From Amphiscolops sp. MND2022 (lineage: Eukaryota): 64,000 bases of DNA. Shown here in pieces: positions 46,885 to 64,000 of the stretch. The position numbers and the translations under genes were made by a program. Every line of letters starts with the position of its first letter. Position 1 is the stretch's first letter. The DNA lies in assembly GCA_964187785.1 (NCBI GenBank), contig OZ076412.1:16616001-16680000 (forward strand), written 5' to 3'. The notes beneath the pieces are model-generated. The model made no database searches. It was not told where the DNA came from and saw only the letters and a list, made by a program, of their open reading frames with translations.

Positions 46885-47086
46885 ATGTCCGATGATGACA
46901 GTCAGAAAATCATCTCAAGTCTGACCCCTGATCAAATTGCAGAGTTCAAAGAGGCCTTTGACCTTTTCGATGTGAGTGGCAATGGGGCCATCGGCTTTGA
47001 GGAGCTACAGACATGTTTGACCTCCATGGGGTTCTCCCCTGACCCCGCAGAGATCAAAGCTATGATTGACGAAGTCGACGAGTCAG
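46885..47086 (+). CDS. Calmodulin/troponin-C-like EF-hand protein, first coding exon
   Basis: MSDDD..LTPDQIAEFKEAFDLFDVSGNGAIGFEELQTCLTSMGFSPDPAEIKAMIDEVDESG; acceptor TTTCAG at 46846; donor GTCAGT at 47087 inside EF-loop 2, a position that also carries an intron in calmodulin genes. Downstream exons not found. Confidence 0.85.
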
Positions 47087-47457
47087 GTCAGTGGCAAAAT
47101 TTTATCAAAATTCATGCCTAAATTTTATCTGAACATGAATGATTCTTGCAAAATTTTGATGCATTAACCGCTGCACTGTTAAGCATCTTGAATGACGAGA
47201 GAAGTTTAGAATGAATGGATAATTGCTAAAAATCATTTTTGCATGTGTTTGTTGTTCTATTTTAATATCCAGTGAAGTGAAACAATTCTTTAAAAAGTTT
47301 TTACAGTAAGTCTAATTTTGATGTATTTTTCTCCACTCATTTTCTACCAGTTGCCATGATTTGCTTTTTGCCTCAACAAATGAAGAAACCTTTAATGATT
47401 TGCAAAGTTGTACAGTTTCTCATTATGAATTAGTTATCACTTGGAAATCATTACCAA

Positions 47458-48154
47458 TATAGCGGACAGCAAACAGGAAATGAATTTTTTAATACATGTG
47501 AGACTTCATACACGTTACATATACACATCTATATATTGAAAAATATTAACAGCGTTGCTTAATATACATTGTAACAATTGTTGTGCACATTTTACTTTTT
47601 TTAAAATATTTTACAAACAATTATCCAGGCAGTTCCAGGCAGTGTGCATTTTAAAAAAGCCTTGTGGTCGTTTCTAAAAATTCAGCTGCCTTGCAGTAAT
47701 AAATATTTTGTTGAGTCTGATTCAGCTTCCCAATTGTTCAGCCGCCCCCTTATTTCAGCTGCCCCTTATTTAAAGCTGCTCTTATTATTTTATGCGCCCA
47801 ATTCAGCTGCTCCTTTATTAACATTCATCAAAAGCCCCACTCTTACCCAGTGCAGGATTAATTATTTATTCGTTTCTTGCACCTGCAGAAGTATCTTCAG
47901 AAACCGAAAACTATCACAGCCATAACATCATCCATCAAGCCAAATGTAAGTTGCTGTGTGTTACTTAATAATTTTGGTCAGTAAATATCGTTCTTTAAAA
48001 TTGAGTTTTCATTTTCTTATAGACTTTTTTTTGTTCTTTTTTTAGAAATATCCACTAGTCACTTTTAAAAACAAAATATATCCATTTACCCCAACAATCG
48101 CCCTGCGCATCGAAACTTGAAACGAATTCAAATCTAGTAAAAAGCGATTGTTAA
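47458..48154 (+). repeat. 5' LTR (697 bp)
   Basis: Direct repeat of 59355-60051; 2 mismatches seen (GTGTG/GTTTG; AAACTT/AAAGTT). Confidence 0.97.
47946..47951 (+). promoter_or_regulatory. Splice donor GTAAGT in the LTR, preceded by AT
   Basis: Perfect consensus donor: CCAAAT|GTAAGT. Confidence 0.65.
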
Positions 48155-48156
48155 AA

Positions 48157-48174
48157 TGGTGACAAGGGTGGGAT
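48157..48174 (+). promoter_or_regulatory. Primer binding site (18 nt, tRNA-Leu-like 3' end)
   Basis: TGGTGACAAGGGTGGGAT = reverse complement of ATCCCACCCTTGTCACCA; 2 nt after the LTR. The tRNA identity is an inference. Confidence 0.85.
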
Positions 48175-48561
48175 ATTTGTAAAAAGAGAAGTTTTTTTTA
48201 CAAAAAAACAATAAAGTAACTTAGAACCCCCATCAAAACATTCTTAGTCCTAGACCCGATCCAAAAATTTTTTTTGAAATGTGCCATTTCCTGGTTCGCC
48301 AGTGTTGCCCATAAGATTCCCAATCCGGACATGGTCCGTGCCTAGTTTTCCAGCTCAATGCTGTGACTTTCCGCTTCGGCGTGTCTCAGGCTTTAAAATG
48401 GCACATTTGACCCAATGCCCTTAAGTTTTAAGAAGTTACACGGTAAGTGCTTGTCATAAAACAAACAGTAGCCAATTTTTTGTAACATTTCTATCAAAAT
48501 AGTTCCGTTTTCTTTTTGATAACCTAAATTTTATTAACCGCCGCGAGTTTTTTTTGTTGAT

Positions 48562-48831
48562 ATGCCTTGTGCTCACAATACGCATTCTCACCTACCGTTG
48601 TACGTTTTTCCCCAACGACCGCTTCGACCATCAAGTCCTCCGCCCTCTTACAGCGAAACACGTGAAAGACCGATATTCACGCCCTGTTTTTTAAGTTTTC
48701 TACTCTTGATCCTCTGTTTTGCGCTTCTCTTGACCGTTTTAGCCCTTTGTGCGATGTCGTACGAAATCAACAAGATAAATATAACTTGTAAAGCACTTCA
48801 AACCCAAAGAGTGGACTATACGTCTCTGTAG
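48562..48831 (+). CDS. Leader ORF-a, 89 aa, PPxY motif plus single transmembrane segment
   Basis: ATG start; PPPSY; FLSFLLLILCFALLLTVLALCAM; NIT sequon after the TM. Confidence 0.45.
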   Translation: MPCAHNTHSHLPLYVFPQRPLRPSSPPPSYSETRERPIFTPCFLSFLLLILCFALLLTVLALCAMSYEINKINITCKALQTQRVDYTSL

Positions 48832-48841
48832 GAGCGGCCTA

Positions 48842-49240
48842 ATGTATACTTTTAGCATACCTGTTTCCGTTTTGTCAAACACACCGCCTCAAAACTTCGT
48901 TATTCCTTGCTACTTCTGCCAAGTGAAACTTTTCAAAATTCCATTATCGCATCAACCAGAACGTCGTTTTACGGCACATGAACTGTCGATTCATTTGCGT
49001 CTTGAGGCTATCCACAATTGGCAACATCGAAACGTTTGTTCAACTTTCCCGTATGGTCGTGTTGATAACAATGCAAGTGTAAAAGCTTCCTGTGCGTCCT
49101 TTTTCCCTCAATTATCCAATATTTGGGCTTCTCATATTCAATTTCTAGCAATACACGTAACGAATCCATTCTATTTGGTCTATCCCGACTGCAAACCACC
49201 TAGTCTCAATTTTGGTCCGCTGCGAATGGATCGCATGTGA
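48842..49240 (+). CDS. Leader ORF-b, 132 aa, unknown
   Basis: ATG 10 nt after the ORF-a stop; ends just before the gag ATG; Cys/His-containing (CYFC). Confidence 0.35.
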   Translation: MYTFSIPVSVLSNTPPQNFVIPCYFCQVKLFKIPLSHQPERRFTAHELSIHLRLEAIHNWQHRNVCSTFPYGRVDNNASVKASCASFFPQLSNIWASHIQFLAIHVTNPFYLVYPDCKPPSLNFGPLRMDRM

Positions 49241-49281
49241 AACGTTCTAGACCTAACGTAGACTTTAAGCGTTCAAATACA

Positions 49282-50502
49282 ATGAGCACTCAACCAAGCA
49301 CCCCCACAACGGCCACCTCGACAGCGGTAACCAATACCACTACAACCCCAGTTACTAGTGGTGGTGCAAGTAGCTCCCAAGCACCAGCACAAGCACCTAC
49401 CGTGGGTTCTACAACTCCTAACACTAGTACAACCCCAACAGCTTCCTTTTTCACTCTGCCTGGCGGTAGACAAAACCCAACAAGTGTTCCATACATAGCC
49501 CCGCTTCCGTCATGTCTGATGCCAGAGTCTTTCACAGGAAAAGGTGATTTCGAAGATTACCTGCAACAATTTAACACAGCAGCACTTCTCTCAGGCTGGT
49601 ATTCGAACGCACACGATAACAGACCACATTATTTTGCGTTGCGATTGAGAGAAAATGCTTTGCATTTCTACACTACGTTGTCTCCATCACAACAAACTAA
49701 CTTCGATATGCTCGTTGACGCGTTCCGCCAGAATTACACAACTAATGGCGATATTCTGAAAGCAAGATTGAAAGCCGCGAAGCAGCAACCCAACCAAGAT
49801 ATTTCATCTTTCCTATGTGACGTTCGGACGCTGGCGCGTCGTGCATATCGAGATCATCCTGCTATGATTGATCCGGTAGTTCTGACGTGCTTCATTGAAG
49901 GGTTAAGCGACAAAACGCTTCGATGGGAGCTCCGAAAAGCCAAGCTAGCCACAGCGGATGATGCTTTGTCCTTGGCTATGGAGCTGAATTCGTTCCTGGA
50001 GATTGAGAACGGAAACCCCCAAGCCGCTCAAACAGTTAACCGAGTTAGTACTTCTTCTGAAGCGGAGCCATCAGCGTCCAAAATTATGGCTGATTTTGTT
50101 CGATCATTACAAACTGAACTTCAGTCGTCAACGTATCGGTCCAATAATGATTTCCATCAACGAGGAGACACAAAATCATCAAACAGAAATGATCACTCGA
50201 GATCGCAGAGTAATGATTCCAATCGGAGTGGCCAGTCAGTACGATTTCAGTCGTCACAAGGACGCGAACGACCAAATAACGCAGGCAGATCTGACAAAAC
50301 ACAAAAACAACAGTATCGCCAAGATTCCCCCCATCCCAAGAAACAAGGCAACAATAACAACACGCAAAACAATCGGAAGCCGTGCGAGCGTTGCACACGC
50401 AAAAATCATACAACGAAGGAGTGCAAAGCTTGTTTCAATTGTTTGAGAGTCGGTCATTTCCAGAATGAATGCAAGGCTCCCAAAAGGGAACATTTAAACT
50501 AG
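49282..50502 (+). CDS. gag: Gag with capsid-like core and two CCHC zinc knuckles
   Basis: PESFTGKGDFEDYLQQF..W; CERCTRKNHTTKEC and CFNCLRVGHFQNEC; first ATG at 49282. Confidence 0.95.
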   Translation: MSTQPSTPTTATSTAVTNTTTTPVTSGGASSSQAPAQAPTVGSTTPNTSTTPTASFFTLPGGRQNPTSVPYIAPLPSCLMPESFTGKGDFEDYLQQFNTAALLSGWYSNAHDNRPHYFALRLRENALHFYTTLSPSQQTNFDMLVDAFRQNYTTNGDILKARLKAAKQQPNQDISSFLCDVRTLARRAYRDHPAMIDPVVLTCFIEGLSDKTLRWELRKAKLATADDALSLAMELNSFLEIENGNPQAAQTVNRVSTSSEAEPSASKIMADFVRSLQTELQSSTYRSNNDFHQRGDTKSSNRNDHSRSQSNDSNRSGQSVRFQSSQGRERPNNAGRSDKTQKQQYRQDSPHPKKQGNNNNTQNNRKPCERCTRKNHTTKECKACFNCLRVGHFQNECKAPKREHLN

Positions 50503-53500
50503 AAATGTCTACGCTAGCGGGTCAGAGCGCAGACAAGACCACAAACCGAGGCCCGCAAATTCAGACTCTTAACTCTGTGGTGGATCACAGAAGTGTATTC
50601 GTCCAATTATCCATTTTTAATACGGTGATTGAGGCTGTGTGTGATAGTGGAGCAAGTGTGTCTTGCCTGAGTTCTGATGCATTTGGGAAATTGAAGAACG
50701 GGAAGAAATTAGAGCTAAACCCGTCAGACACGAAGCTAGTAGCAGCCAACAAACAACCTATAGTAACACGCGGCATTGTGCAACTACCTTTGCAAATCGG
50801 TCCGAGACATTACGAACATTCGTTTCACGTTCTGGAGCAAGCAGAAACTGACTGTCTACTCGGCTTAGACTTCCTCAAAACTCATAAATGCGACCCGTTG
50901 TTTTCCCAAGATATTCTGCGTCTGGATGAAAAGACGACAGTCCCCCTGTATCATCGTCAGCTCACAGATGCTAAGACAACTGTGTTCAGGGTGGTGGTGT
51001 CCGAGACAGTTTCGGTACCACCACGACATACAATGATTGTGCCAGCGCACATCAAGGATTGGAAACGCCCATTGAATGAGGGTGTAGCAATTTTCGAGCC
51101 GCACGAACGGTTCGATGGCTCAAAAGAAGCAGTGGCACCAAGTATTTTGTTCAACTTTGCTGAGGAAAACATCCCGGTGACGATCGAAAATTCTGGAGAA
51201 GAGCCACTGATCTTGTATGAGAAAACAACTTTGGGTACTTCAGAAGCAATCCCTGATTTACCCATACAAAACGTTGTAACCGAAACAAAAAGCTTGAAGT
51301 CTAAAATAGACGAAAAGGACGAATCGTACGATTTGAAAAATGTAGTGGATGGAGTTGATCCGGAAATTCCATTCAAAACAAAACAGAAATTCGCAGAACT
51401 TGTTTACGAATTCGAAGATGTGTTTTCGCAAAACCAATGGGACATTCGTCGTTGCGAAGCTACAACACACAAAATAAACGTATACCCCGGATCAAAGCCG
51501 ATTAAAATTCCGAATCGCAGAATGCCCCTCCACTATAAACAGGATCTCCAAGAGAAATTAGACGCGTTCCTGGACAAGAGGTTAATAGCTCCTTGTCACA
51601 GCCCTTACAGTGCACCCGCCATGCTAGTCCCGAAGAAAAACGGAAAACTCCGCCTCGTCATTGACTACAGACAATTGAATAGTCAAACAATCAAGTCTTG
51701 TTGGCCAATCCCTTCGATTGAAGAAATTTTTGACACTCTAGATGGAAGTTCAGTCTTTTCCACTATAGACATGAGTTGGGGATTTTATCAGCTGCCCTTA
51801 GACGAATCAAGTCAAGATTATACTGCTTTCAGCACACCTTTTGGTTCCTTCAAATGGCTTGTAATGCCGATGGGACTCACAAACAGTCCACCGACGTTCC
51901 AAAATTTAATGGAAATCGTTTTGGCGAAACTTATCTGGAAAACAACAGTCCCCTACCTTGACGATTGTATCATCTTTGCCGCTTCCCCGGAGGAACACTT
52001 AGAACGAGTCAGGGAAGTTCTAGGCAGATTTAGACAAGCCAACTTGAAAATAAACCCCCTAAAATGCGAGTTTTTCCGCACCAAAGTCCACTTCTTGGGC
52101 CATGTCATCAGCAAAGAAGGCCTTCAAGTTGATCCCACAAAAATTGCAGCCGTTAAAGAGTTTCCGGTCCCAATTAACCAGACCCAGGTGAAGTCATTCT
52201 TGGGCCTTTGTTCCTACTATAGACGTTACATCAAAAATTTCGCTGAAATCGCTCGTCCCTTGCATAAAGCGAGTGAAACCAACTCGCCTTTTAAGTGGAC
52301 AACTGAGGCAGAGCAAGCGTTTGAAGATCTAAAAGCACGACTCCTCACAACACCAATTTTAGCCTTTCCAACAATGGAAGATCCTTTCATCCTCTACACG
52401 GATGCCAGCCAACTAGCAATGGGAGCCGTTCTAGCCCAAGTACAAAATGGCCAGGAACGTGCTATTTGCTATGCATCAAAGGCATTCTCCAAATCCCAAT
52501 CAAAGTACTCAGCGACGAAACGAGAACTTCTCGCAATGGTCCATTTCACTCGGTACTTCCGACATTACCTACTCGGTAGAAAATTCAAAATTGTCACAGA
52601 CCACAGTGCACTTCGCTGGTTACACAATTTCAAGGACCCCGACGGTCTCATTGCACGTTGGATTGAAAAACTAGCAGCTTTTGATTACGAAGTGCAACAT
52701 AGACCAGGCAAATCCATCGGACATGCCGACAGTCTGTCCAGAATACCAACTGAATCCGTCCAATTAACGCAAGAATGCCGAACAGGAGTCCCAGGTGCAA
52801 CAAAGACGAAGAATTGCAACAATGACGAGGAATGGCCCAACGCACAATCTAACTACAGTATTCACCTATTGCCTAGAGATACAGCATCAATACCACTCCA
52901 AGCTATCATTGAACTCAAGGAAAAAGCTAATAATCACAGCAAAGTTAAAACCGGCGAACTTCTCGAACACGAGCAACCACAAGAAAAGCCTCTACAAGAA
53001 GAACTAGTCATTACAGAAACAGGCATTGTCAAGAATCGCGAGGTGAAGGGCGATTTGTTCAGTTCTTCGGAGTCCCTAGCTCACTGTATCTCAGCTGATT
53101 TTAAAATGAGTTCTGGAATAGCCCGATCATTCAAAAGGAAGTTCCCAGCACAGTATCCAGAGGACTTATCAAAGCAAACTGTGCCACTTTGGGTACAACC
53201 ATTACCTGGTGACGGCCGTTTCCTGTATCACTTGCTGACTAAGGAACGTTACTACCAAAAGCCAACATATACTTCGCTTCGAGCTTCTCTGGAACACATG
53301 CGTAGCCATGCTGAAACGAACGACGTCCTAAAGATTAGTATGCCTCAAATAGGCTGTGGAAATGATAAACTTGACTGGGATTTGGTTCGCAGACTCATCC
53401 GAGAAGTCTTTGACGGATCCAATGTATGTATAACTATTTATTTGCCTCCATCAATTTCACTTGAGAGCGAAGGCCCACCCGTAGAAACCGCTAAAGATAA

Positions 53501-55409
53501 TGAACCAGTGCATGCGGACATTGATGTCCGCAATGCTCAAGATGAGGACGAGGCCCTGAAGATCGTAAAAGAATGGGTTCGCAGGGGTCGTGTGCCGCGG
53601 AATAACGACCTACAAGGAAGTCCCGAGTTAGCATGGAAGCTGTACAATCAATTCCACAGTTTATATCTGGCCAATGACGTCCTTTGTCGACGGTATGAAC
53701 CAGTTGGAAGTGAACTTCCGTACCTACAGCAAATTGTTCCCCGTACCTTGGTAGAACATATCCTAACAAACTTGCACTCTTCCGCTACCAGTGGACATCT
53801 AGGTTTAGCCAAGGTGATGGAGAAAGTTCGACAGCGTTTTTGGTGGCCTGGTTTCAAAGAGGATATCAAGCTTTTCATAAAACGTTGTTCCGAATGTCAG
53901 CGACGCTCGGATCCTCCTAAAACACATCGTCATTCCCTTGTAGAGTGGAAAGCTAGTTATCCCTTTCACCACATTGGAATCGATTTCATGGGCCCATTGC
54001 CGGCCTCGAATGGAAACAAAGTAATTCTGTTGATCGGGGATCATTTCACAAAATGGTATGAAGCAATTCCCTTGCCAGATCAGCAAGCTACAACAACGGC
54101 TACCGCTCTTATCGAACATTGGATCTGTCGATTTGGTTGTCCCTACAGCATACATAGTGATCAAGGACGTAATTTTGAGTCCAAGTTGTTCCAGACGCTC
54201 ATGACAAGCCTTCACATTGACAAAACAAGAACAACTGCTTTTAGGCCCCAGTCTAATGCAGTGATCGAGCGAATGAATCGAACAATCCAGAACATGCTAG
54301 CAAAATGCGTAAACGCTGAACAAAGTAACTGGTCCCAACAGTTACCCTACGTAATGATGGCCTACCGGTCATCTGTACATGAATCAACCGGATATTCGCC
54401 TCAATTTCTTGTTCATGGGCGAGAAATTTCCTTGCCAATCGATTTGATGCACCCTGCACCTGAAGCCGAAAAACCAATGTCGCCTACGGATTTTGTATAC
54501 AATCGAAAATTGGCCTTCCAAAGAGCTTTCGAACTAGTGCGAGCCAACATTAATAAAAACCAAAAACGTCGCAACGCCATTTACAACGAGAAGATCCATG
54601 GTCCTACCTACGAACAGGGACAGAAAGTGTTGCTCCACACACCAGTGGTCCCAGTTGGCCAAACAACCAAGTTCCACAACCCATGGCGTGGTCCATATGT
54701 GATACTTGACTGTTTCAATGAGGTCACATACAAGATAAGAGAATTGTCTACGTCCAAAGAGCTGATCGTTCACTACGATAGGTTGAAACCTTTTTGCGAA
54801 AAACCAGCTACTTCAAATGTGCCTACTGGAAATACTAGCTTAACCCAGCCCACAAAACCAGTTCACTCCAATGTCCCAACACGGAATAACGACTTGAACA
54901 CCACACCACCTGAAACCTCGCATCGATGCTGCATGCATTTTCAACAGCCACCACTGCAGCCTATGAATCTCCACAGCCCTGCTCACCTAAACCACCAGAC
55001 TACTCCAACGCCACAATCAACTAGCCACAATGCTCAGTCACCGACCCAAACCCGAACTCCCGCTTTCCTCTCCGGTAATCAGCATTCCCAATCTTTTCAA
55101 TCTCCTGGCGTTCAGACGATGGCCACTCCCGCAACTCCTTCAGTCGACAACCCTAGTTATCGTCAAGCACCAGCATCCCATTCACCTTTGTCAAACGAAT
55201 CCCGAAACATCGTTGAAAACGCTGCTGTTCAGTTTCGAGATATGATAAACAGACCATACAATCTCCGCGCAAGTACACGCACACAGCGATTGGCGGAACC
55301 CCTGTGTAATTCCTCAATACCTTCTGAACTAACCGATTTCAACTCGCCGCCACTGCACAGCATGCCACATTCCACCAAACGTTCCAAAAACTATACAAAA
55401 AAGAAATAA
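50469..55409 (+). CDS. pol: Pol: protease, dUTPase-like remnant, RT, RNase H, macrodomain, integrase
   Basis: CDSGAS; YLDD; YTDASQLAMGAVL; GDLF..LAHCISADF..LLTKE..MPQIGCGND; H..H..CSEC, IDFMGP, HSDQG, IERMNRT, WRGPY. 1646 codons with no stop. The dUTPase-like call (VPPRHTMIV region) is weak. Confidence 0.97.
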   Translation: MQGSQKGTFKLEMSTLAGQSADKTTNRGPQIQTLNSVVDHRSVFVQLSIFNTVIEAVCDSGASVSCLSSDAFGKLKNGKKLELNPSDTKLVAANKQPIVTRGIVQLPLQIGPRHYEHSFHVLEQAETDCLLGLDFLKTHKCDPLFSQDILRLDEKTTVPLYHRQLTDAKTTVFRVVVSETVSVPPRHTMIVPAHIKDWKRPLNEGVAIFEPHERFDGSKEAVAPSILFNFAEENIPVTIENSGEEPLILYEKTTLGTSEAIPDLPIQNVVTETKSLKSKIDEKDESYDLKNVVDGVDPEIPFKTKQKFAELVYEFEDVFSQNQWDIRRCEATTHKINVYPGSKPIKIPNRRMPLHYKQDLQEKLDAFLDKRLIAPCHSPYSAPAMLVPKKNGKLRLVIDYRQLNSQTIKSCWPIPSIEEIFDTLDGSSVFSTIDMSWGFYQLPLDESSQDYTAFSTPFGSFKWLVMPMGLTNSPPTFQNLMEIVLAKLIWKTTVPYLDDCIIFAASPEEHLERVREVLGRFRQANLKINPLKCEFFRTKVHFLGHVISKEGLQVDPTKIAAVKEFPVPINQTQVKSFLGLCSYYRRYIKNFAEIARPLHKASETNSPFKWTTEAEQAFEDLKARLLTTPILAFPTMEDPFILYTDASQLAMGAVLAQVQNGQERAICYASKAFSKSQSKYSATKRELLAMVHFTRYFRHYLLGRKFKIVTDHSALRWLHNFKDPDGLIARWIEKLAAFDYEVQHRPGKSIGHADSLSRIPTESVQLTQECRTGVPGATKTKNCNNDEEWPNAQSNYSIHLLPRDTASIPLQAIIELKEKANNHSKVKTGELLEHEQPQEKPLQEELVITETGIVKNREVKGDLFSSSESLAHCISADFKMSSGIARSFKRKFPAQYPEDLSKQTVPLWVQPLPGDGRFLYHLLTKERYYQKPTYTSLRASLEHMRSHAETNDVLKISMPQIGCGNDKLDWDLVRRLIREVFDGSNVCITIYLPPSISLESEGPPVETAKDNEPVHADIDVRNAQDEDEALKIVKEWVRRGRVPRNNDLQGSPELAWKLYNQFHSLYLANDVLCRRYEPVGSELPYLQQIVPRTLVEHILTNLHSSATSGHLGLAKVMEKVRQRFWWPGFKEDIKLFIKRCSECQRRSDPPKTHRHSLVEWKASYPFHHIGIDFMGPLPASNGNKVILLIGDHFTKWYEAIPLPDQQATTTATALIEHWICRFGCPYSIHSDQGRNFESKLFQTLMTSLHIDKTRTTAFRPQSNAVIERMNRTIQNMLAKCVNAEQSNWSQQLPYVMMAYRSSVHESTGYSPQFLVHGREISLPIDLMHPAPEAEKPMSPTDFVYNRKLAFQRAFELVRANINKNQKRRNAIYNEKIHGPTYEQGQKVLLHTPVVPVGQTTKFHNPWRGPYVILDCFNEVTYKIRELSTSKELIVHYDRLKPFCEKPATSNVPTGNTSLTQPTKPVHSNVPTRNNDLNTTPPETSHRCCMHFQQPPLQPMNLHSPAHLNHQTTPTPQSTSHNAQSPTQTRTPAFLSGNQHSQSFQSPGVQTMATPATPSVDNPSYRQAPASHSPLSNESRNIVENAAVQFRDMINRPYNLRASTRTQRLAEPLCNSSIPSELTDFNSPPLHSMPHSTKRSKNYTKKK
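50493..50540 (+). promoter_or_regulatory. -1 ribosomal frameshift signal
   Basis: T TTA AAC heptamer directly before the gag TAG; pol is in the -1 frame; stem GTCTACGCT/AGCGCAGAC begins 7 nt downstream. Confidence 0.85.
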
Positions 55410-55489
55410 CTTCAAATAGTTGCATTTTATTTCTCTCTCCAGGTCATTTCCCATCACCAATGGCCTAACAAGGCTCCTCTGTTTTTCAG

Positions 55490-57836
55490 GATTTCCTACT
55501 TTCCAAACTCTCAACATTTCTGGTTTCTCTTTCTGTTCGTCCGTTGGTCGGTCCTGATCTTTGCGGATGTGCAGTTCACAACACACCTCAACGATGACCT
55601 GGAAAAACCCGTATTCAAGAAAGGTGCAGCGTTTGTGTTCAAATACCAAGCTGTTACCTCGGAGAGCGAAAGCAAAGTCCGCGTGTTCTCTCCCTTCCCC
55701 AAGATGCCTCTAATCAACATTACCAATGCCATTAACATGATCAATGCCTTCCAGACAGCCCCTCGAAGCATCGGAGGTATGTACATCAATACAAACTGCA
55801 AGTTTACAGACGTTAATGACACCTATGACCTCCTCCTGCAACAACTTGTGACAAGAGTCAATTTCCTGCAAACAGAGTTGGCAGCAGCTCAACAAGAGGA
55901 AGACACTCTTCTGGAAGTTGTGAATTCTTTCATTCCACCAGCTGTTAGACAATCTGATGACATCGCACGACCACGTCGAGCAATTGCCGCTATTGCTGCA
56001 ATCGCAGCAGGTGCCGGAATGGTCTTGGGTGAACCAATCAAAGACGCCGCTTGTAGTGCGCTTTCTATATTTAACCTCTGTCACACCAATGAAGATCTGA
56101 GTCGCGACGTGGAACGCATAATGAGCACACAGCAAGAAATTGTTGATACACTGCAGCGTGTTCAAACTCGAAACGACAAGAATTTCTTCCTTCTAGGAAA
56201 CGAGATTAAACAGACCCAGGAAAGTGTCCAGAAACTAAAAGAAAGTGTCGGTCTCCGCTTCCAACAAATGGAGTTTTACCTAGTTAATGCTACTCGCTAC
56301 TTGGCTGCGACTAGCCTTGAGTGTGATAGAGTGATTATTCGTCACCTTAGCCTTCAGCAATTCTTGCGAAATTACGTCTATCAGCTAGGGACACTTTACA
56401 CTCATCTCAAGTCGTACCGTGCAGCGTTTTACGCTTACCGCATTTCGCTCTACTCCACCATTTCCTCGTTAGCTAGTGGCTACATCACACCTCAGTTTCT
56501 TCTGCCTCAACAAGTGGCGCAAATTGTCAAAGACTTAGCAGATGACGAAGTAAAGCGAGGCACCAAACTGTCCCCAGCTATTCGACCTGGTTTTGAGGCA
56601 ATATACTATGAGATACAATTAGTACTCGAAGTAACTTTGATACCACGTGGTATATCTGTCATTCTTGGGATCCCAATGAATTCAAAGTCGTCGACGTTTG
56701 ACATTTACCATGCCACGCCTCTGTATCAGCCCAACAATGACCAGAAGACTGCGTCGCTCTTCAATTTTGCGAACCCTTTTTTGGCCGTATCTACTGACAA
56801 TAGTAGATTTGCAGAACTCGGTGCTAATACGCTGCAGCAATGTTCGGGTAACAATCGTATCAAATTATGTAGAAAAGGCTTCTCGACAACAACCGATGAA
56901 ACTCTTCTTTGCTTAGGATCCTTGTTCTATAACTACGATGTTCCCGCCTTACGCAATTGCGAAGTCCGCGCAGTACTTTTACCCGACGCTCCTCAGGCAT
57001 TTTATTTGGCGGATGGAATGTACCACGTCATATCGCGGTCTCCCACCCTCAAATTCAAAAACGATAGCCAAATTGACGGCCTTTCTATCTCTACTATCAC
57101 CTGTCAGGCGTGTGTCATACGCCCTAGCTGTTCGAGTACACTGTCTTTCAACCAGGGTGAACTGGTTCTTCACCCTGACATGGATTTTTGTGAGACCCGA
57201 CCGGAGCCTTTTCTTGCGTCGATTGAGCTGACACCGTCTTTGAATCAAGTCTTCGCGCATGTACCCGCCATTGGTAGCGCCGAATTTCAGGCATATTCTA
57301 CTAGTGAAGCTCGTCAGTCAGTTCTTGGCAGTCTACGAATGGAACTAGCCGAACTACCTGACGTCCAACACATGTCGCCGGAGACTCTAGATCAACTGAC
57401 AGAGCCAATCGCTAAGTATTATTCTTCGATCTCGCCGGCCACATCAGCGGCTTTACAGTCATATTTACCCACCCGTACTGCTTTTTTACTTTCGTCATTG
57501 TCCATTACAATGTCTATTTTAACATTTTCTATAAGTTTTACTTTGTTTAGACGTCATTGGCAGCGTCTTTTTACCAATCCTCAACGCTTTTTCCGGGCTA
57601 CTTCCGGTAGATTCATTAATATAGTCGAATCAATTACCGCGGAGTATGATTTGACCAATTCTCCATTTTTGTATTTGACGGACGCTGAATTCCGCGCACT
57701 GATTTTGCTGGCTCGCGAAACCATTCGTCAAGCTGAACCGAAACCATCTAATTACACTGCACCCAACGCCCCTACACTTCCACCACGTGTTTATCCTAAT
57801 ATTAGTGCGCCTACTTATGAGTCTACTTCGACATGA
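55490..57836 (+). CDS. env: Env, class I F-type fusion glycoprotein (predicted 782 aa after splicing)
   Basis: Signal-like HFWFLFLFVRWSVLIFA; furin site RPRR (55968-55979) then AIAAIAAIAAGAGMVLG; heptad region; ITPQFLLP motif; Cys-rich ectodomain; TM AFLLSSLSITMSILTFSISFTLF; tail with YPNI. Confidence 0.9.
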
Positions 57837-57908
57837 TTTAATTGCTTAGCACATTTCTGTCTCACTGTCAATTTCAGCTTCTTTATCAACTACTTAGGAT
57901 TTCCCTTC

Positions 57909-58195
57909 CTAGATGCTTTCCTACGCAGCTAGTGCCTGTTTTACACGTTTCCGTGTTCCGTTACTTTCCCTTAGGTTGTCTTTTCCTTCCTAGTTGCTTC
58001 ACTACGCAACTAGCGCCTGTATTGATACACGTTTCCGTGGTGAATCTCTTTTCGCTAAGCTGTCTTTTTCTCCTAGTTGCTTCGCTACGCAACTAGTGCC
58101 TCACAACACACGTTTCCGTGTCCGCAATTAAGTTTTTTCCTAATTGTTTAAACAATTAGTGTCTAGCAGATGCGTTTCCGCATCCTAAGTAGGAT
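57909..58195 (+). repeat. Three ~82-bp tandem units with embedded hairpins plus a 20-bp palindrome
   Basis: CTAGTTGC-N8-GCAACTAG at 57990 and 58073 (variant at 57909); CACG-TTTC-CGTG in each unit; CTAATTGTTTAAACAATTAG at 58140-58159. Confidence 0.85.
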
Positions 58196-58242
58196 TTCCG
58201 TACAAAGTGTAATCGGTGCAATCAGTTTTTTTGTTGTTTCAG

Positions 58243-59314
58243 GTTCCAGTTTCCAGCAGCTCCAGTTCCAGCGCCCTCCCTCCTCAGCAGCGGTCGCGTG
58301 CAGCCTCTGGCAGAGGGATATGTAGTCCGCTTGTTGGACAAAGACGATTATCGTATCAAGAGAATAAACCCCGCTACACAAACTGTTGTGCTACAAAAAA
58401 TTAATTCAAGTAATCGTTGCTTTGCTCGACCAGCTACGGAAATCTGGCTTCCTCCTCCAAGCAGTAACAGCCTGAGCGTGGAAGTGGACTGCCCTCCCCC
58501 TCCAGCAATCTGTGATTGCTCGCCAGTACCCCCTAAATTAATAGTGGACACCTGCGATGTAGCAGTGGATGCGTCCCTCGACGCTGACGACAGCATGGAA
58601 CTCTTAGTATCAGAGTTTTCTTCGGTTGGCGAACTCAATAAGGGTTTTGAAGAAGCCCGTGCAGCAGCTAATAAGGCTCGCATCGAGTGTGAGCATACGT
58701 TCGACCTCCTTTGCGAGGAAATGACTCTTCGGAAGGCAAAGGAAAAGGAAATTCATGAAGCAAAAATCGAGCTCGCTGGTTTACAAACCAACATTGCTTC
58801 TCAAGTCGTCGCCCTCGCCAAAAAAGACAGTGAAATAGCCGCCCTGAAGAAGCGCCTCAGTGCCCTCAGCGACGAAAACAGCTCTTTGCTGCAACACAGT
58901 CTCCAGCAAAGCGAAGAACTCTCTAACCTTAAACTAGCCGCCAACAGGGTTTCAGATGCCCATCTAACCACTGACATGCTAATTTATCAACTTTCCACAT
59001 ATACTCCTGAACTCGATTTCGCAGATGAGAACATATTCTTTGATATACTTGGCCTACCACCCACCGCCGATGTCGAAAAGATCAATCGTCATGCTAGACA
59101 TCTTTTAAGACTCGTACACCCCGACAAGAACCCTTCCATCCCAGCCGAAGTGTCCCAACTGGTCCCCTGCCTTAAGGAAGCGAAAAACGTCCTCACGGAT
59201 CCCCGGCTCAACAAAGTATACCAGTGTTGCGGTATGACAGGTGTTCGCCGGGCCCGTCGTAACTTACGGACCTGCATGGATTGTGACTCCCACATGTCGG
59301 ACTGGTTCGAGTAA
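58243..59314 (+). CDS. ORF4: coiled-coil plus J-domain (DnaJ-like) protein with Cys-rich tail (predicted 357 aa after splicing)
   Basis: FFDILGLPPTADVEKINRHARHLLRLVHPDKNP..LKEAKNVLTDPRLNKVY; heptad-rich middle; CC..CMDC tail; acceptor TTTTTGTTGTTTCAG at 58242. Confidence 0.88.
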
Positions 59315-59340
59315 TTTGGCTGGCGGGGACGCAGCCTTTC

Positions 59341-59350
59341 ACGGGGGAGG
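59341..59350 (+). promoter_or_regulatory. Polypurine tract
   Basis: ACGGGGGAGG, 4 nt before the 3' LTR. Confidence 0.8.
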
Positions 59351-59354
59351 TTAG

Positions 59355-60051
59355 TATAGCGGACAGCAAACAGGAAATGAATTTTTTAATACATGTGAGA
59401 CTTCATACACGTTACATATACACATCTATATATTGAAAAATATTAACAGCGTTGCTTAATATACATTGTAACAATTGTTGTGCACATTTTACTTTTTTTA
59501 AAATATTTTACAAACAATTATCCAGGCAGTTCCAGGCAGTGTGCATTTTAAAAAAGCCTTGTGGTCGTTTCTAAAAATTCAGCTGCCTTGCAGTAATAAA
59601 TATTTTGTTGAGTCTGATTCAGCTTCCCAATTGTTCAGCCGCCCCCTTATTTCAGCTGCCCCTTATTTAAAGCTGCTCTTATTATTTTATGCGCCCAATT
59701 CAGCTGCTCCTTTATTAACATTCATCAAAAGCCCCACTCTTACCCAGTGCAGGATTAATTATTTATTCGTTTCTTGCACCTGCAGAAGTATCTTCAGAAA
59801 CCGAAAACTATCACAGCCATAACATCATCCATCAAGCCAAATGTAAGTTGCTGTTTGTTACTTAATAATTTTGGTCAGTAAATATCGTTCTTTAAAATTG
59901 AGTTTTCATTTTCTTATAGACTTTTTTTTGTTCTTTTTTTAGAAATATCCACTAGTCACTTTTAAAAACAAAATATATCCATTTACCCCAACAATCGCCC
60001 TGCGCATCGAAAGTTGAAACGAATTCAAATCTAGTAAAAAGCGATTGTTAA
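59355..60051 (+). repeat. 3' LTR (697 bp)
   Basis: Near-identical to 47458-48154; followed by TSD ACCAA. Confidence 0.97.
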
Positions 60052-60084
60052 ACCAAACTTAGCTTCTGCTCAAAGTTCAATCCA

Positions 60085-60793
60085 TTATTTTCTTCGGATA
60101 CTATCGTTTCTGGCAGCATTTACGAAATCAACCAGTTTTATAACCAAAAAGATTAGCATTGATATAAATATCAGACTCAGTAGCATAAGCTTAACGTCAA
60201 CCACAGTCCGTTTTGCTTTCTCAGAAGCTCCGTTAACTGGTATAGTTTGTAATGGCAACGATAATTGCATGTCATTCCACCAAAAACATGCGTTTGGCGG
60301 GTACCCCATTTTCTTGAACAGCTCATATGGATCAGCCCCTCCTGCGTTGTACTTCAAAATTTCCAGCACATCTGTTTCTCGCACAAATTTTGGACAATCC
60401 GGAAGCTGGTTTCTAAGTTCGTCCAGCTGGAAAAAATAATCAGCCAATTTTAGCTGGTAAGATTTGACGTCTTTATCACCCGCAAACCATTGGGGTCCCT
60501 TGTACAATAAATCATGTCCCCAGTTACTCCACATATCTGTATAAGGGGTTCCAATTTGCAATTCAATCATTTTATTGCCGACCGATTCTTTTACAAGCAA
60601 GATCAGATGAATGCGTCTGTATCCAATCTCTGTGTATTTGCCGGCTCCGGGACACATTCCATAGCATTTGGTAGTATTGACCTCAAAGTGGGCTGAGTCA
60701 TTTGAAACCAAGTCTTTCAGTCTCAGCGCTTCGTCAACTGTTTGACACGTCAGCCTCATACCAATAATGTCAGTTAAATCCGTCAGTCGCACG
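60085..60793 (-). CDS. Terminal exon of a RelA/SpoT (p)ppGpp-synthetase-domain protein with C-terminal membrane anchor
   Basis: DIIGMRLTC, GYRRIHLIL, IELQIGT, MWSNWGHDLLYKG in canonical order; TTTCAG acceptor at 60799-60794; hydrophobic LMLLSLIFISMLIFLVIKLV near the C-terminus. Confidence 0.85.
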
Positions 60794-61959
60794 CTGAAAC
60801 ATAATCACTATAGATAACGTTGTAACTTGAAAGTGACCCACGCCAATTTTTCTAAACTTCTGTCAATCAAAAGCTAGTTTCATTTGATACTTCAAACTTT
60901 TTTTTAATTTTTCGAAGAAGTAAATTTCCGAATAAATTGTCAATAGATCCGCATCAGAACTATTACTAAAACTCCTGATGGACTGGCTGCCAAATATAGA
61001 ATGAAGCTTTCATGCATCTTGTGAAAAGTCGGATACTCAAAGGAAATATAAATGACTGAAATTTTCCGTGAACGTTTCGTACAATCATTATAAAAGCAAC
61101 AGGCAACCTTCAAAAACGTGTTTTTGTATTAATTCGGATGAAAAGCTACAGCGGAGAACTATATAGATAGAAAGCAATTCATCTGCAATTGTATTTTCTC
61201 AATTTCTTCGAAGCACTTAAAAAAGTTTTTATAAAGTGATTGTACTCAGCATTTTGGTACCTTTGGTAAAAGAAGGTCAGGTCAACTTCAAGTCTTTCAT
61301 AAGTCGTACAACAAGAAATGACCAATGATGCAACTTTCGAATTTGAAAAAGAATTTTTACACTGGAAACAATCACGAGACTTGAGTTAGAACTTTATGTT
61401 CCAAAGAAGTCGCATACCCTTGCACACAAAGGTGAAACTCGTTTATTGAACTGAAAGTAATTCAAAGGGGACCCTTTAGTGTTTTTTCGAACTTTGTAAG
61501 CATAGAAAATATTTATTTTAGCACGGGACTTGAACCCACGTGCATGCAGTGGAACTAACTCACCAATGTGAGAAGTCCGCGTTATCAGCTAGTTCAAGTG
61601 GAAACTTTCCACCAGTGCTTCTAGTAAGGATTGGCTGAAACTGGGGAGAAAAAGGTGGAAAAATGTTCCAGTAATAAAACTGAAGGAAAACTATAAATCA
61701 CAACATTGGTTGTAGCTGATTATGATTCTGTAATTCAGATATATTTAATCGATTTGACCCACTAGATATTAATGTGTGACTGTTATACGATGGTTCCCTT
61801 TCGAATGAATAAAAAATTGAACAGCCAATAGAAATTGTTTTGTAACAACATCATGTTGTAATATAGAAAATATAGAAAAAAATATAGAAATAACAATGTA
61901 ACGCTGACGAAACGCAAATGCAAAAACAAACCTTAAAAAAACACATTTGACTGCAATTA

Positions 61960-64000
61960 ATGCTGACAGAACATTCAAATAAAAACTTTAAAAAACGTGT
62001 GGTAGAGGGGTTGACTTTTCTGTATAATAATATAAGATCAGTATCTGCAAATTTAGAAGATCTTGAAATATTGGTTGCACAAACAAAGCCGTCCGTAATC
62101 GCATTAACCGAAACATGGTGGAAAAACGAAAATGAAGCAGGACTGTATTGTCTCGAAGGATACCAAAGACCTTTCGCTAGCACCAGAAACCGCAAACGAG
62201 GTGGAGGTGTAGCAATTTATGTTACATCGGACCTGGAAGCTGAATTACTTCACACGGATGAAGCCTACGAGTCATTATCTGTAAAAATTAGTGACTTCAA
62301 AAAGAAAAAGAAAATAATAGTTTCTTGTTTCTATTGTGAACCGTCGAGGAATAGAAGTCAGTATCTGGACCATGTTGAAGAAGTTTTGGATAAAAATGGT
62401 GAAGGTATGCAGATAGCTTGTGGAGACTTCAATATTGATTTGTTAAACGAAAACCTTGCAGCACGGATAACGTTAGAAAATTTGATGACAGCCCAAGGGT
62501 TGGAATTGGTTAGCTTGCGACAACCTACAAGAGAAACTGCTACATCTAGTACTTGCATAGACTCCATATACAGCAATATTCCGGTGCAACTAACGCAGAT
62601 TAAAAAAACAACATTCTCTGACCATTACAGCTTAGAACTGTCTTTCGAAATTTTTTATGAAATTGCGGAAAACATCTTTGAATATCGATCACTCAAGAAA
62701 TTAGAAGACTCTTTTTACTGTGAAAAATTCCTTTTCTTCTTGAATCATTCGTTGGGTAAAATTAATGAACAAGATTCAGATGCCGAATCATATCTAGAAG
62801 AGATCGCGCATGTAATCAAAGATTCAACTGATAAATATTTCCCAACCAAGCAAGTGAAACGCCATGAACCCAAAAAGTCTTGGATAACAAATCGTATTAA
62901 GAGGCACATAGCAAATAGAGATAAACATTATCATTTATGGTTAAAAACAAAATCATCTGTTGATTACGAGAAGTACAGGAAAAAAAGAAATGAAGTCAAT
63001 ATGGAAATTAAAAACGCAAAGCGGAATGAAGTTCAATCTAGAATTGACCGCAATAATTCGAGAGAATTTTTCAGATACATAAAAAAGGTGAAAGGCACTT
63101 TGAATCAAGTAGCAAAATGTGATTTATCTGCAGAAGATTTTAATAATTATTTCTTAACTGCTGCTGATACCTCAGACACAATTTTAACTCATCGTTTTAA
63201 AAGTCAGCAGGTTGAACAACCGCAATCAATATTCATGCGCCCAGTTACTGAGGATGAAGTTTCGAAACACATTTCCACATTGAAAAACAAAAAATCTGTT
63301 GGCATGGATTGCATTGAGGTCGCCGTATTAAAGAAAGCTTCCCGAATTGTTAGTCCTTATCTAAAAACTGCTTTCAACAATTGCATATATGCAGGAGTGT
63401 TTCCTCAAAGTATGAAAATTGCTAAAGTAATACCAATTTTTAAAGCTGGTGCAACAAGTTTAGCTTCCAATTACAGGCCGATTTCTATTCTGGGTAATTT
63501 ATCAAAGCTCTTCGAGAAGGTAATACACAGAAGATTGATGAACTATTTTGAAAAATTTGGAATTCTTTCGGAAAATCAATATGGGTTCAGAAAAAAGAAA
63601 GATTCTATCCAAGCCGCAACATCACTTTTTAAAGAAATAGAAGCAAATTGGAGGTCCAAAATTAAAACGAACTCTGTTTTTATTGATTTCAGGAAAGCTT
63701 TTGATGCAGTTGATCACAGCGTTCTGTTGAATAAATTGAATCGAATCGGTATCAGAGGAGTTTCTCATAAACTCCTAACGAGTTACTTAACGAATAGGTG
63801 TCAGTATGTGAAAATTGAGGATAAATGCTCATCCATGAAATTAATAAAACGTGGAGTCCCACAGGGATCTATACTTGGCCCTCTCTTATTTCTTGTTTAT
63901 ATTAATGATTTGGGCGCCGATGAAAAATGGCAGAGTAAAATAATAAAGTATGCGGATGATACAGTTATGATCGAAAAGCTAAATACAAAGTCTGATGATA
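61960..64000 (+). CDS. LINE ORF2 (APE endonuclease plus RT), L2/CR1-like, open to the window end
   Basis: NIRS, LTETW, RGGGVAIY, GDFNID, TCIDSI, SDH; NYRPISIL, QYGFR, DFRKAFD, GVPQGSILGP, YADD; no stop seen on manual translation. Confidence 0.95.
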   Translation, partial: MLTEHSNKNFKKRVVEGLTFLYNNIRSVSANLEDLEILVAQTKPSVIALTETWWKNENEAGLYCLEGYQRPFASTRNRKRGGGVAIYVTSDLEAELLHTDEAYESLSVKISDFKKKKKIIVSCFYCEPSRNRSQYLDHVEEVLDKNGEGMQIACGDFNIDLLNENLAARITLENLMTAQGLELVSLRQPTRETATSSTCIDSIYSNIPVQLTQIKKTTFSDHYSLELSFEIFYEIAENIFEYRSLKKLEDSFYCEKFLFFLNHSLGKINEQDSDAESYLEEIAHVIKDSTDKYFPTKQVKRHEPKKSWITNRIKRHIANRDKHYHLWLKTKSSVDYEKYRKKRNEVNMEIKNAKRNEVQSRIDRNNSREFFRYIKKVKGTLNQVAKCDLSAEDFNNYFLTAADTSDTILTHRFKSQQVEQPQSIFMRPVTEDEVSKHISTLKNKKSVGMDCIEVAVLKKASRIVSPYLKTAFNNCIYAGVFPQSMKIAKVIPIFKAGATSLASNYRPISILGNLSKLFEKVIHRRLMNYFEKFGILSENQYGFRKKKDSIQAATSLFKEIEANWRSKIKTNSVFIDFRKAFDAVDHSVLLNKLNRIGIRGVSHKLLTSYLTNRCQYVKIEDKCSSMKLIKRGVPQGSILGPLLFLVYINDLGADEKWQSKIIKYADDTVMIEKLNTKSDD

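Follow-up and report, generated by a model that had tools for sequence, protein, structure and literature searches.

A three-exon RelA/SpoT synthetase-domain gene with predicted secretion and membrane-anchoring signals in an animal genome

The stretch of DNA analysed here, 64,000 nucleotides from Amphiscolops sp. MND2022 (hereafter the window), carries on its minus strand an open reading frame (ORF) with a RelA/SpoT-type synthetase (SYNTH) domain. Taken as a whole, it seems moderately probable that an animal gene of three exons, intact and ending with this frame, encodes a secreted, membrane-tethered nucleotide pyrophosphokinase. For the functional part of this reading, namely that the protein acts as an outward- or lumen-facing synthetase moving pyrophosphate from ATP to a purine nucleotide, the chances appear about evenly balanced.

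The RelA/SpoT character of the terminal exon (exon 3) is confirmed, with homologue scores lying far beyond chance: a word-indexed search returned 14 database homologues at E 1e-18 to 1e-81. The frame is open over 60085-60792 (235 codons, with the stop codon TAA at 60085-60087), and base 60793 finishes a split codon (AA plus C, Asn). All four synthetase motifs listed in an initial annotation made from the letters of the window are present on the minus strand and in order (DIIGMR, GYRRIH, ELQIGT and WSNWGHDLLYK, the last with the form W-x4-H-x3-YK), and the TTTCAG acceptor by which it had delimited the exon is seen as a pyrimidine tract and CAG directly preceding exon 3. Exon 3 scores 39.9 bits (E 5.6e-10) against the Pfam family RelA_SpoT (PF04607), for which the curated cut-off is 27 bits, and the search with this hidden Markov model that had been proposed as a check thus came out positive. 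The match spans profile positions 21-110 of 113, and only the first strand of the domain is therefore absent from exon 3. The hydrophobic C-terminal membrane anchor was likewise recovered by hydropathy, as a transmembrane (TM) helix followed by a short tail (Table 1).

Where does the rest of the protein lie? Neither tblastn nor three-frame reading found the N-terminal third of the homologues in 60793-64000; two further coding pieces were placed about 7-8 kb upstream, beyond the window end, by tblastn with ten homologues. They lie on a contig piece (L001) in which position x corresponds to window position 70793 - x and exon 3 occupies 10000-10708. The second piece, 6.9 kb upstream of exon 3, is the exon with the RxK motif that the initial annotation had been unable to find. 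Both introns are of the GT...AG type with matching phases (0, then 2), and the joined coding sequence (CDS) comprises 219 + 200 + 706 = 1125 nt, or 375 codons, in three exons. The exon 2/exon 3 junction reads EKLQRR-N-VRLTDLTD, without insertion or deletion relative to EKLERKGYDLKDLTD of the intronless paralogue P0003. These intron features and the exact colinearity with intronless paralogues once the exons are joined support the proposal that the gene is split, and at the level of the gene model the window gene is an intact three-exon nuclear gene.

Table 1. Features of the RelA/SpoT-domain gene and its surroundings (window coordinates; pieces beyond the window end are given in L001 coordinates with their window equivalents)
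Feature	Position	Strand	Basis or remark
Exon 1, CDS	L001 1792-2010 (equivalent of 68783-69001)	-	ATG, hydrophobic signal-like segment, GHTRDY motif; donor GTGAGG
Exon 2	L001 2861-3060 (equivalent of 67733-67932)	-	Acceptor TTTTCAG, donor GTGAGT; RxK motif
Intron 2, 3' part	60794-64000	-	About 6.9 kb in total; runs off the window to the equivalent of 67732
3' splice acceptor of intron 2, GTGATTATGTTTCAG	60794-60808	-	Junction colinear with intronless paralogue P0003
Exon 3, last coding exon of the RelA/SpoT-domain gene	60085-60793	-	ORF with junction and phase; 46-69% identity to 14 homologues
PF04607-matched part of the SYNTH domain	60496-60783	-	Pfam match; residue roles from SaRelP (PMC5794853), mapped by spacing
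C-terminal extension of the synthetase domain	60190-60417	-	Alignment blocks; LDE-R-x2-LPDCP motif and GYPPNACFWWNDM block, conserved Cys in both
Transmembrane helix LMLLSLIFISMLIFLVI, 17 residues	60139-60189	-	Mean Kyte-Doolittle 3.14 over 15 residues
Short cytoplasmic tail, 17 mostly basic residues (predicted)	60088-60138	-	After the TM helix
3' untranslated region (UTR) stub, 32 nt, stop codon to insertion	60053-60084	-	Long terminal repeat (LTR) boundary 60052
Young LTR retrotransposon, 12.6 kb, in the 3' UTR of the gene	47458-60052	+	LTR pair, target duplication CCAA (4 bp)
ATTAAA, candidate original poly(A) signal	47391-47396	-	About 95 nt after the stop codon once the retrotransposon is removed

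Residue roles were taken from a solved relative. In the AMPCPP complex of S. aureus RelP (SaRelP), the ligand is bound through an adenine-stacking pair (Arg78 and Arg112), four phosphate contacts (Lys80, Ser84, Lys88 and Arg91) and a ribose contact (His190), with Asp107 and Glu174 as ligands of the Mg ion and Tyr151 of the G-loop binding the acceptor base (PMC5794853). Exon 2 encodes GRIKSASSVREKLQRR, which has the form R-x-K-x3-S-x3-K-x2-R (Arg, then Lys at +2, Ser at +6, Lys at +10 and Arg at +13), the same spacing as in SaRelP. In exon 3, DIIGMR corresponds to the Mg-binding Asp and, at +5, the adenine-stacking Arg, GYRRIH to the G-loop Tyr, ELQ to the catalytic Glu and HDLLYK, at +16, to the ribose His. 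Judged by this spacing, every ATP-binding and catalytic residue of RelP is kept in the window gene, and in an alignment of 71 sequences the ten RelP-type residues are either invariant or conserved to at least 90%. The departure from the canonical motif that the initial annotation had flagged, Gly for the Arg of EIQIRT, is also real (ELQIGT).

The fold was approached through the paralogue P0003, the AF2 model of which (built from the 71-sequence alignment; pLDDT 86, pTM 0.80) retrieved RelP and RelQ first in a Foldseek search of the PDB (E ~1e-9), followed by CapRel, long Rel/RelA and SaEAS 8vx3. On RelQ 5dec it superposes with a TM score of 0.78 and an rmsd of 2.7 A over 191 columns at 28% identity. 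A profile of the family matched RelQ/YjbM in the PDB at E 5e-12 and FaRel2 at E 1e-6, with RelP also among the matches. Identification of the domain as a RelA/SpoT synthetase domain is thus backed by Pfam, by the profile match to RelQ and by the paralogue model, and the model indicates a small-alarmone-synthetase fold for the window product as well. Curated subfamilies fit less closely. The NCBIfam RelQ equivalog NF053588 gives 30.1 bits for exon 3 and 57.7 bits for P0003 against a cut-off of 320, the PADLOC candidate PDC-S33 is matched only over the catalytic core (profile positions 36-175 of 349), and searches of NCBIfam, PADLOC and PHROGs, which returned generic sub-threshold RelA/SpoT matches only, assigned no curated subfamily. 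Atlas and AFDB-cluster searches led to generic bacterial or viral RelA/SpoT clusters.

The window gene belongs to a family. The 14 relatives from the word-indexed search (320-346 aa, 46-69% identity) include a named Clytia hemisphaerica protein, "RelA/SpoT domain-containing protein" (P0007, CACVBU010000362.1), and an exhaustive profile search added proteins from Hydra, Strigamia and EukProt along with many fragments; PF04607 scores of the paralogues and relatives range from 48 to 81 bits. The Clytia gene is an uninterrupted single-exon ORF on a 1.96-Mb scaffold, and so is the Hydra vulgaris gene (XP_065674469, LOC124819215; 627 aa, two tandem units) on a 44.7-Mb chromosome, while T1IUF0 (P0024) of the centipede Strigamia maritima, found by the profile search, is a divergent relative. 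The same assembly (ERZ25074608) contains at least three further paralogous loci, on three other contigs at similar depth. P0003 is intronless, 332 aa long and 69% identical to exon 3, with all key residues kept; P0012 (L006 6001-6990), also intronless and accompanied on its contig by a 136-aa fragment (P0013), shows replacements at the catalytic Glu, at the RxK Lys, at the ribose His and at YK, which make it a likely non-catalytic copy; the more divergent P0167 has lost the ribose His. Because the Hydra, Clytia and same-genome paralogous genes are intronless, the two introns of the window copy are derived. Synonymous sites between the paralogues are saturated, so that only non-synonymous divergence could be given (dN ~0.29), and this combination fits long-term constraint.

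Some individual members deserve a separate remark. The Hydra member (L014 3001-4884, CP147951.1) is one ORF with two complete RelA/SpoT units, one signal peptide and no C-terminal anchor. The centipede protein P0024, to which P0023 is sister, falls inside the animal-type clade described below and shares the Gly variant, the family pro-region and the C-terminal Cys block; either the family would be older and patchy in animals or it would have been captured more than once.

A synthetase domain of this kind is typically prokaryotic, and the runs that contain exon 3 come from the same sample as the assembly and are hence not independent of it. Could the gene then simply reflect bacterial or phage contamination, or a chimeric contig? 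The explanation is extremely improbable. The gene has two spliceosomal-type introns and sits on a contig of 1.08 Mb, in which exon 3 lies at single-copy depth between eukaryotic elements: read depth is about 70x over 60070-61842 versus hundreds to thousands on either side, and the flanking regions are an LTR retrotransposon and a long interspersed nuclear element (LINE). Two alleles are present, the second in three of the four runs; with the frame kept, it differs at 18 positions in 782 nt, where 8 changes are synonymous and 7 replace an amino acid; a Gln codon stands in place of its stop codon and adds five codons; and over the first 125 codons, the catalytic core, it has 5 synonymous changes versus 1 conservative Ile/Val change. 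Orthologues reside on chromosome-scale Hydra and Mb-scale Clytia scaffolds, and the family signature occurs in 0 of the bacterial, archaeal or viral genomes scanned. Introns, depth, contig size, alleles and orthologues together effectively exclude contamination and chimerism. The suggestion that the genome is animal-like agrees with these data, the setting being eukaryotic, the nearest named relatives those of Clytia hemisphaerica and Hydra vulgaris, and the depth single-copy between retroelements; this gene family by itself suggests a hydrozoan affinity.

How did an animal come by such a gene? The best profile matches beyond the family (E 1e-26 to 1e-11) form two groups. The first consists of small proteins, one of which (P0035) adjoins a phage portal gene, with relatives on five IMG/VR contigs; the second consists of C-terminal domains of 700-3700-aa proteins that also carry NUDIX, DRAT-like, inorganic pyrophosphatase, RadC or HNH domains. 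Both share with the animal family an extra C-terminal helix and an LDxG...P-x-C-P motif, represented in exon 3 by LDELRNQLPDCP, with a conservation of 90% or more for the Asp and the two Pro across the 71 sequences. In a maximum-likelihood tree of these sequences, the 19 animal-type members, of which those without an organism name were called eukaryotic by shared family-specific motifs, form one clade (SH-aLRT 97) with P0022 as its sister (SH-aLRT 86), and clade and sister together are nested among phage and bacterial sequences; the immediate sister branch is weakly placed (support 81-86). A scan of 185,579 species genomes of bacteria and archaea, and of IMG/VR, gave no match to any of the family signatures IGTPYT[ND]M, IG-x-R-x-TCQT and CYG[MI]CPG. 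A signature of the sister group likewise found no relative in the 185,579 prokaryotic genomes, sister-type genes being present on the five IMG/VR phage contigs only. Given the nesting, the shared motifs and the absence of the family signatures from the prokaryotic genomes scanned and from IMG/VR, the best reading is an old horizontal acquisition from a phage or bacterial source, with secretion and anchoring signals apparently added later as a eukaryotic "dressing". The initial annotation had suspected a horizontally acquired synthetase, and the tree and the ancestral intronless state fit a bacterial or phage origin. As for P0022 itself (EukProt GILJ01000951, residues 260-571 of 571 aa), it has a TM anchor, retains the Arg of ExQxRT and is without the CYGMCPG insertion; judging from these traits, it looks like an intermediate form.

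Alignments and hydropathy together yield one plan for the proteins of the family. All full-length family members begin with a hydrophobic segment (Kyte-Doolittle 2.1-3.4), and a short pro-region of the form G-H-S/T-R-D/E-Y/F is common to the family; a loop with an R-x-[KR]-R site is present in 9 of 17 members. After the pro-region come two helices and then the SYNTH domain, into which a family-specific insertion, CYGMCPG-x-GKY, is placed immediately N-terminal of the G-loop Tyr. The C-terminal helix carries LD-x-R-x2-LP-x-CP, a motif held in common with the phage and bacterial sister sequences, and the GYPPNACFWWNDM block of the C-terminal extension is specific to the animal-type family. A C-terminal TM or tail resembling a glycosylphosphatidylinositol (GPI) signal is found in 13 of 17 members, and three types of ending can be told apart: in 10 members, a GPI-signal-like hydrophobic stretch followed by 0-8 residues; a TM helix with a tail of 17-29 residues (the window copy, P0166 and P0022); and no anchor (Hydra, Strigamia, P0019 and P0027). 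The conserved Cys pairs together with the signal and anchor features suggest that the catalytic domain is extracytosolic, and we infer that the window product is a type I membrane protein, with its catalytic domain predicted to face the exterior or the secretory lumen.

If so, a plausible course of events can be outlined. A bacterial or phage synthetase gene would have been acquired horizontally and then given eukaryotic secretion and anchoring signals; the resulting type I membrane protein would display its catalytic domain to the cell exterior or the secretory lumen; and, with ATP as donor of a beta,gamma-pyrophosphate and the 3'-OH of a purine nucleotide as its acceptor, the enzyme would there form products of the (p)ppGpp or (p)ppApp type, which might act on associated microbes, on prey or on purinergic signalling in the animal itself. 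A more ambitious proposal can be advanced only tentatively: hydrozoans and apparently at least one centipede would display a captured phage or bacterial synthetase on the cell surface or in secretory compartments and employ it to make (p)ppGpp/(p)ppApp-type nucleotides outside the cytosol, whether as a host-made signal to, or weapon against, associated bacteria or prey, or as a sink for extracellular ATP. If true, this would be the first case in which an animal genome encodes an alarmone synthetase activity.

A number of points weigh against a secreted pyrophosphokinase. The supply of ATP outside the cytosol is uncertain; the calls of signal peptide, GPI signal and TM helix are based on hydropathy only; and the window copy is without the R-x-R-R site found in most of its relatives. 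The gene model rests on homology and splice signals with the exons kept separate, and the four runs with exon 3, all from the assembly's own sample, are DNA runs, as follows from the fact that run contigs cross the acceptor and cover the intron. An LTR element 32 nt after the stop codon and a LINE in intron 2 may leave the window copy poorly expressed. Finally, Gly takes the place of the Arg of ExQxRT in the window gene, as it does throughout the 19-member animal-type clade, the corresponding residue being R/K/H/Q/M in prokaryotic relatives and Arg in the sister P0022; the replacement may bear on the choice of acceptor, and the substrate could differ.

Taken further, this last point would mean that the fold was kept while the chemistry changed or catalysis was lost, the product being an enzyme with a new acceptor substrate or a nucleotide-binding pseudo-enzyme. 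The Gly is fixed in all members of this clade, at a position occupied by Arg, Lys or His in P0022 and in most of the prokaryotic relatives; two Cys-containing insertions have been gained, one of them (CYGMCPG-x-GKY) just before the acceptor-binding Tyr; and P0012, which lacks the catalytic Glu, implies that non-catalytic copies are tolerated in the same genome. However, near-invariance of the ten RelP-type residues across the family is not what one expects of a pseudo-enzyme, and the Arg position already varies (R/K/H/Q/M) among prokaryotic relatives. A change of this kind therefore strikes us as quite unlikely.

It is also conceivable that the protein is a delivered toxin or defence effector of venom, nematocyst or mucus that acts inside prey or bacterial cells, either by depleting ATP via (p)ppApp, in the manner of Tas1/Apk, or by pyrophosphorylating tRNA, as CapRel and FaRel2 do. 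In 9 of 17 family members a predicted signal peptide precedes a pro-region that ends in R-x-[KR]-R, an arrangement usual among secreted cnidarian proteins that undergo processing. Moreover, both hydrozoans and centipedes possess venom, members without a C-terminal anchor would be soluble (Strigamia P0024 and P0027), phage proteins and the C-terminal domains of giant conflict-type proteins with many domains stand closest to the family, and CapRel and FaRel2 are among the structure and sequence matches. Yet the window copy and most of its relatives end in a TM or GPI-like anchor, which a tethered enzyme fits better; no translocation domain is visible, and a literature search found no paper tying RelA/SpoT to venom. 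On this evidence a delivered toxin appears unlikely, and a tethered synthetase, facing outward or into the lumen, is preferred.

Which known systems come closest? Among solved proteins, the best sequence and structure matches are RelQ (YjbM/SAS1) and RelP (YwaC/SAS2) of Firmicutes, which resemble the window protein in being single-domain enzymes with the same ATP-binding and catalytic residues. They are, however, cytoplasmic bacterial tetramers, whereas the window protein has a predicted signal peptide, a pro-region, Cys-rich insertions and a membrane anchor, carries Gly in ExQxRT and is encoded by an animal gene with introns. The closest functional analogues are the exported alarmone synthetases (EAS), SaEAS of Streptomyces albidoflavus and VpEAS (Ahmad et al. 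2025; PMC12691689). SaEAS, which works outside the cell, has a Sec signal and no immunity gene; its products in spent medium are (p)ppGpp and (p)ppApp, its Km for ATP is low, and the study that described it makes no mention of eukaryotes (PMC12691689). Here, too, a SYNTH-only enzyme would stand behind a secretion signal, and SaEAS 8vx3 is a structural match to the P0003 model. Nevertheless, the identity to SaEAS is only 14% and SaEAS is not in the nearest clade, and EAS are soluble proteins exported by bacterial Sec or specialised secretion, in contrast to the predicted ER-type signals and membrane or GPI tethering of the window family. By analogy, the best reading of the window family is that of a eukaryotic counterpart of bacterial EAS.

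Other relatives are more distant in architecture. The toxic small alarmone synthetases (toxSAS: FaRel, FaRel2, PhRel, CapRel) and the secreted (p)ppApp synthetases Tas1/Apk have the same fold and share the phage/conflict-system neighbourhood, but toxSAS and CapRel come with an antitoxin, an immunity partner or a C-terminal sensor, none of which the window gene, encoding an anchored eukaryotic protein, possesses; its neighbours are retroelements and a calmodulin-like gene, with no adjacent antitoxin as in toxSAS/CapRel. The phage or "polyvalent-protein" RelA/SpoT clade is nearest by profile score and shares the C-terminal helix and the LDxG...P-x-CP motif, but its ExQxRT motif retains Arg, Lys or His, and it shows neither the CYGMCPG insertion and NACFWWNDM tail nor a signal peptide or an anchor. 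Precedents for acquired synthetase-only RSH proteins in eukaryotes are "divRel" (Dictyostelium, Aspergillus, diatoms) and the RelA_SpoT effector domains of fungal NLR proteins, which differ in lineage and architecture, none being from animals.

In animals, the only member of the RSH superfamily previously recognised is Mesh1 (PMC3153485; PMC9166373). Atkinson et al. did not find small alarmone synthetases in animals, although extracellular ppGpp signalling was already a subject of their speculation (PMC3153485), and a 2022 review describes metazoan genomes as lacking (p)ppGpp synthetase homologues (PMC9166373). Mesh1 has an HD hydrolase domain and is reported to be cytoplasmic, in contrast to the synthetase domain and predicted extracytosolic location of the window family, so a simple cycle between the two would not be expected. 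Since no relative from flies or humans is among the named matches, reports of ppGpp in flies and human cells are not explained by the family either. Full-text literature searches that covered cnidarians (Hydra, Clytia and Hydractinia among them), Strigamia and venom found no description of such a family, even though members are already present, unstudied and under automatic names, in the public protein sets of Clytia, Hydra and Strigamia. What is new here is the combination of a known catalytic domain with an animal host and a predicted secreted, tethered architecture. An intact, selected, multi-copy synthetase-domain family in animals stands against a literature that states the hydrolase Mesh1 only; its secreted or membrane-tethered architecture has not been described for eukaryotic RSH enzymes and parallels the EAS reported in 2025; an animal enzyme that may make bacterial-type alarmones provides a directly testable case; and the family offers a clean example of a gene, presumably acquired horizontally, that gained a signal peptide, a processing site, an anchor and, in the window copy, introns.

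The state of the window copy itself has to be considered separately from that of its family. The retrotransposon in its 3' UTR is very young: its two LTRs, each of 698 nt (47458-48155 and 59355-60052), agree at 696 of 698 positions (99.7%), and read depth jumps at 60052 from ~70x to more than 1000x. Upstream, intron 2 contains from about 61960 on a LINE ORF (endonuclease and reverse transcriptase) on the plus strand, with high-copy read depth from 61843. Perhaps, then, the window copy is a silenced or decaying paralogue of a functional family after these recent transposon hits. In keeping with this, the 99.7%-LTR element parts the ORF from its likely ATTAAA signal, a LINE lies inside intron 2, the R-x-R-R processing site has been lost, and the second allele has Gln at the stop codon, with 6 of its 7 replacements outside the catalytic core. 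On the other hand, three exons are open with canonical splice sites, all catalytic residues are retained, and both alleles are in frame with 5 synonymous changes versus 1 conservative change in the core. Any decay following so recent an LTR insertion would not yet be visible, so that intactness of the coding sequence says little either way and is no proof of current expression. On balance, silencing or decay is rather unlikely, and an intact gene remains the preferred description of the window copy.

Several smaller observations were made around the gene. In intron 1 (L001 2250-2740), nested inverted repeats with arms of 19-22 nt that are 80-86% complementary form a palindromic unit of ~470 nt, which may be an insert resembling a miniature inverted-repeat transposable element; a transposon origin of the intron as a whole is not supported, the inverted repeats being internal only, with none at the intron ends. 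In intron 2, run-derived contigs from all four runs skip 40 nt at 61389-61430 and 63 nt at 61638-61702, which are indel polymorphisms. At the other end of exon 3, the 807-nt exon 3 contig of each of the four runs (X1-X4) stops aligning exactly at 60052, and the 25 further letters, which mismatch the window, could be an empty-site allele without the insertion. Among the ORFs of the LTR element are gag-pol, an env-like one and one with a J domain, and its read depth suggests tens of copies in the genome. A Pfam scan of ten large ORFs gave transposon domains only, and a database search with the Pol of this element led to metagenome-style entries. Beyond it, at ~46900-47060 on the plus strand, lies a calmodulin-like EF-hand exon (FDLFDVSGNGAIGFEEL) convergent with the RelA/SpoT gene. 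Before the LTR insertion this exon was within ~0.4 kb of the RelA/SpoT 3' end, a closeness that explains why the initial annotation had spoken of a neighbouring calmodulin-like exon.

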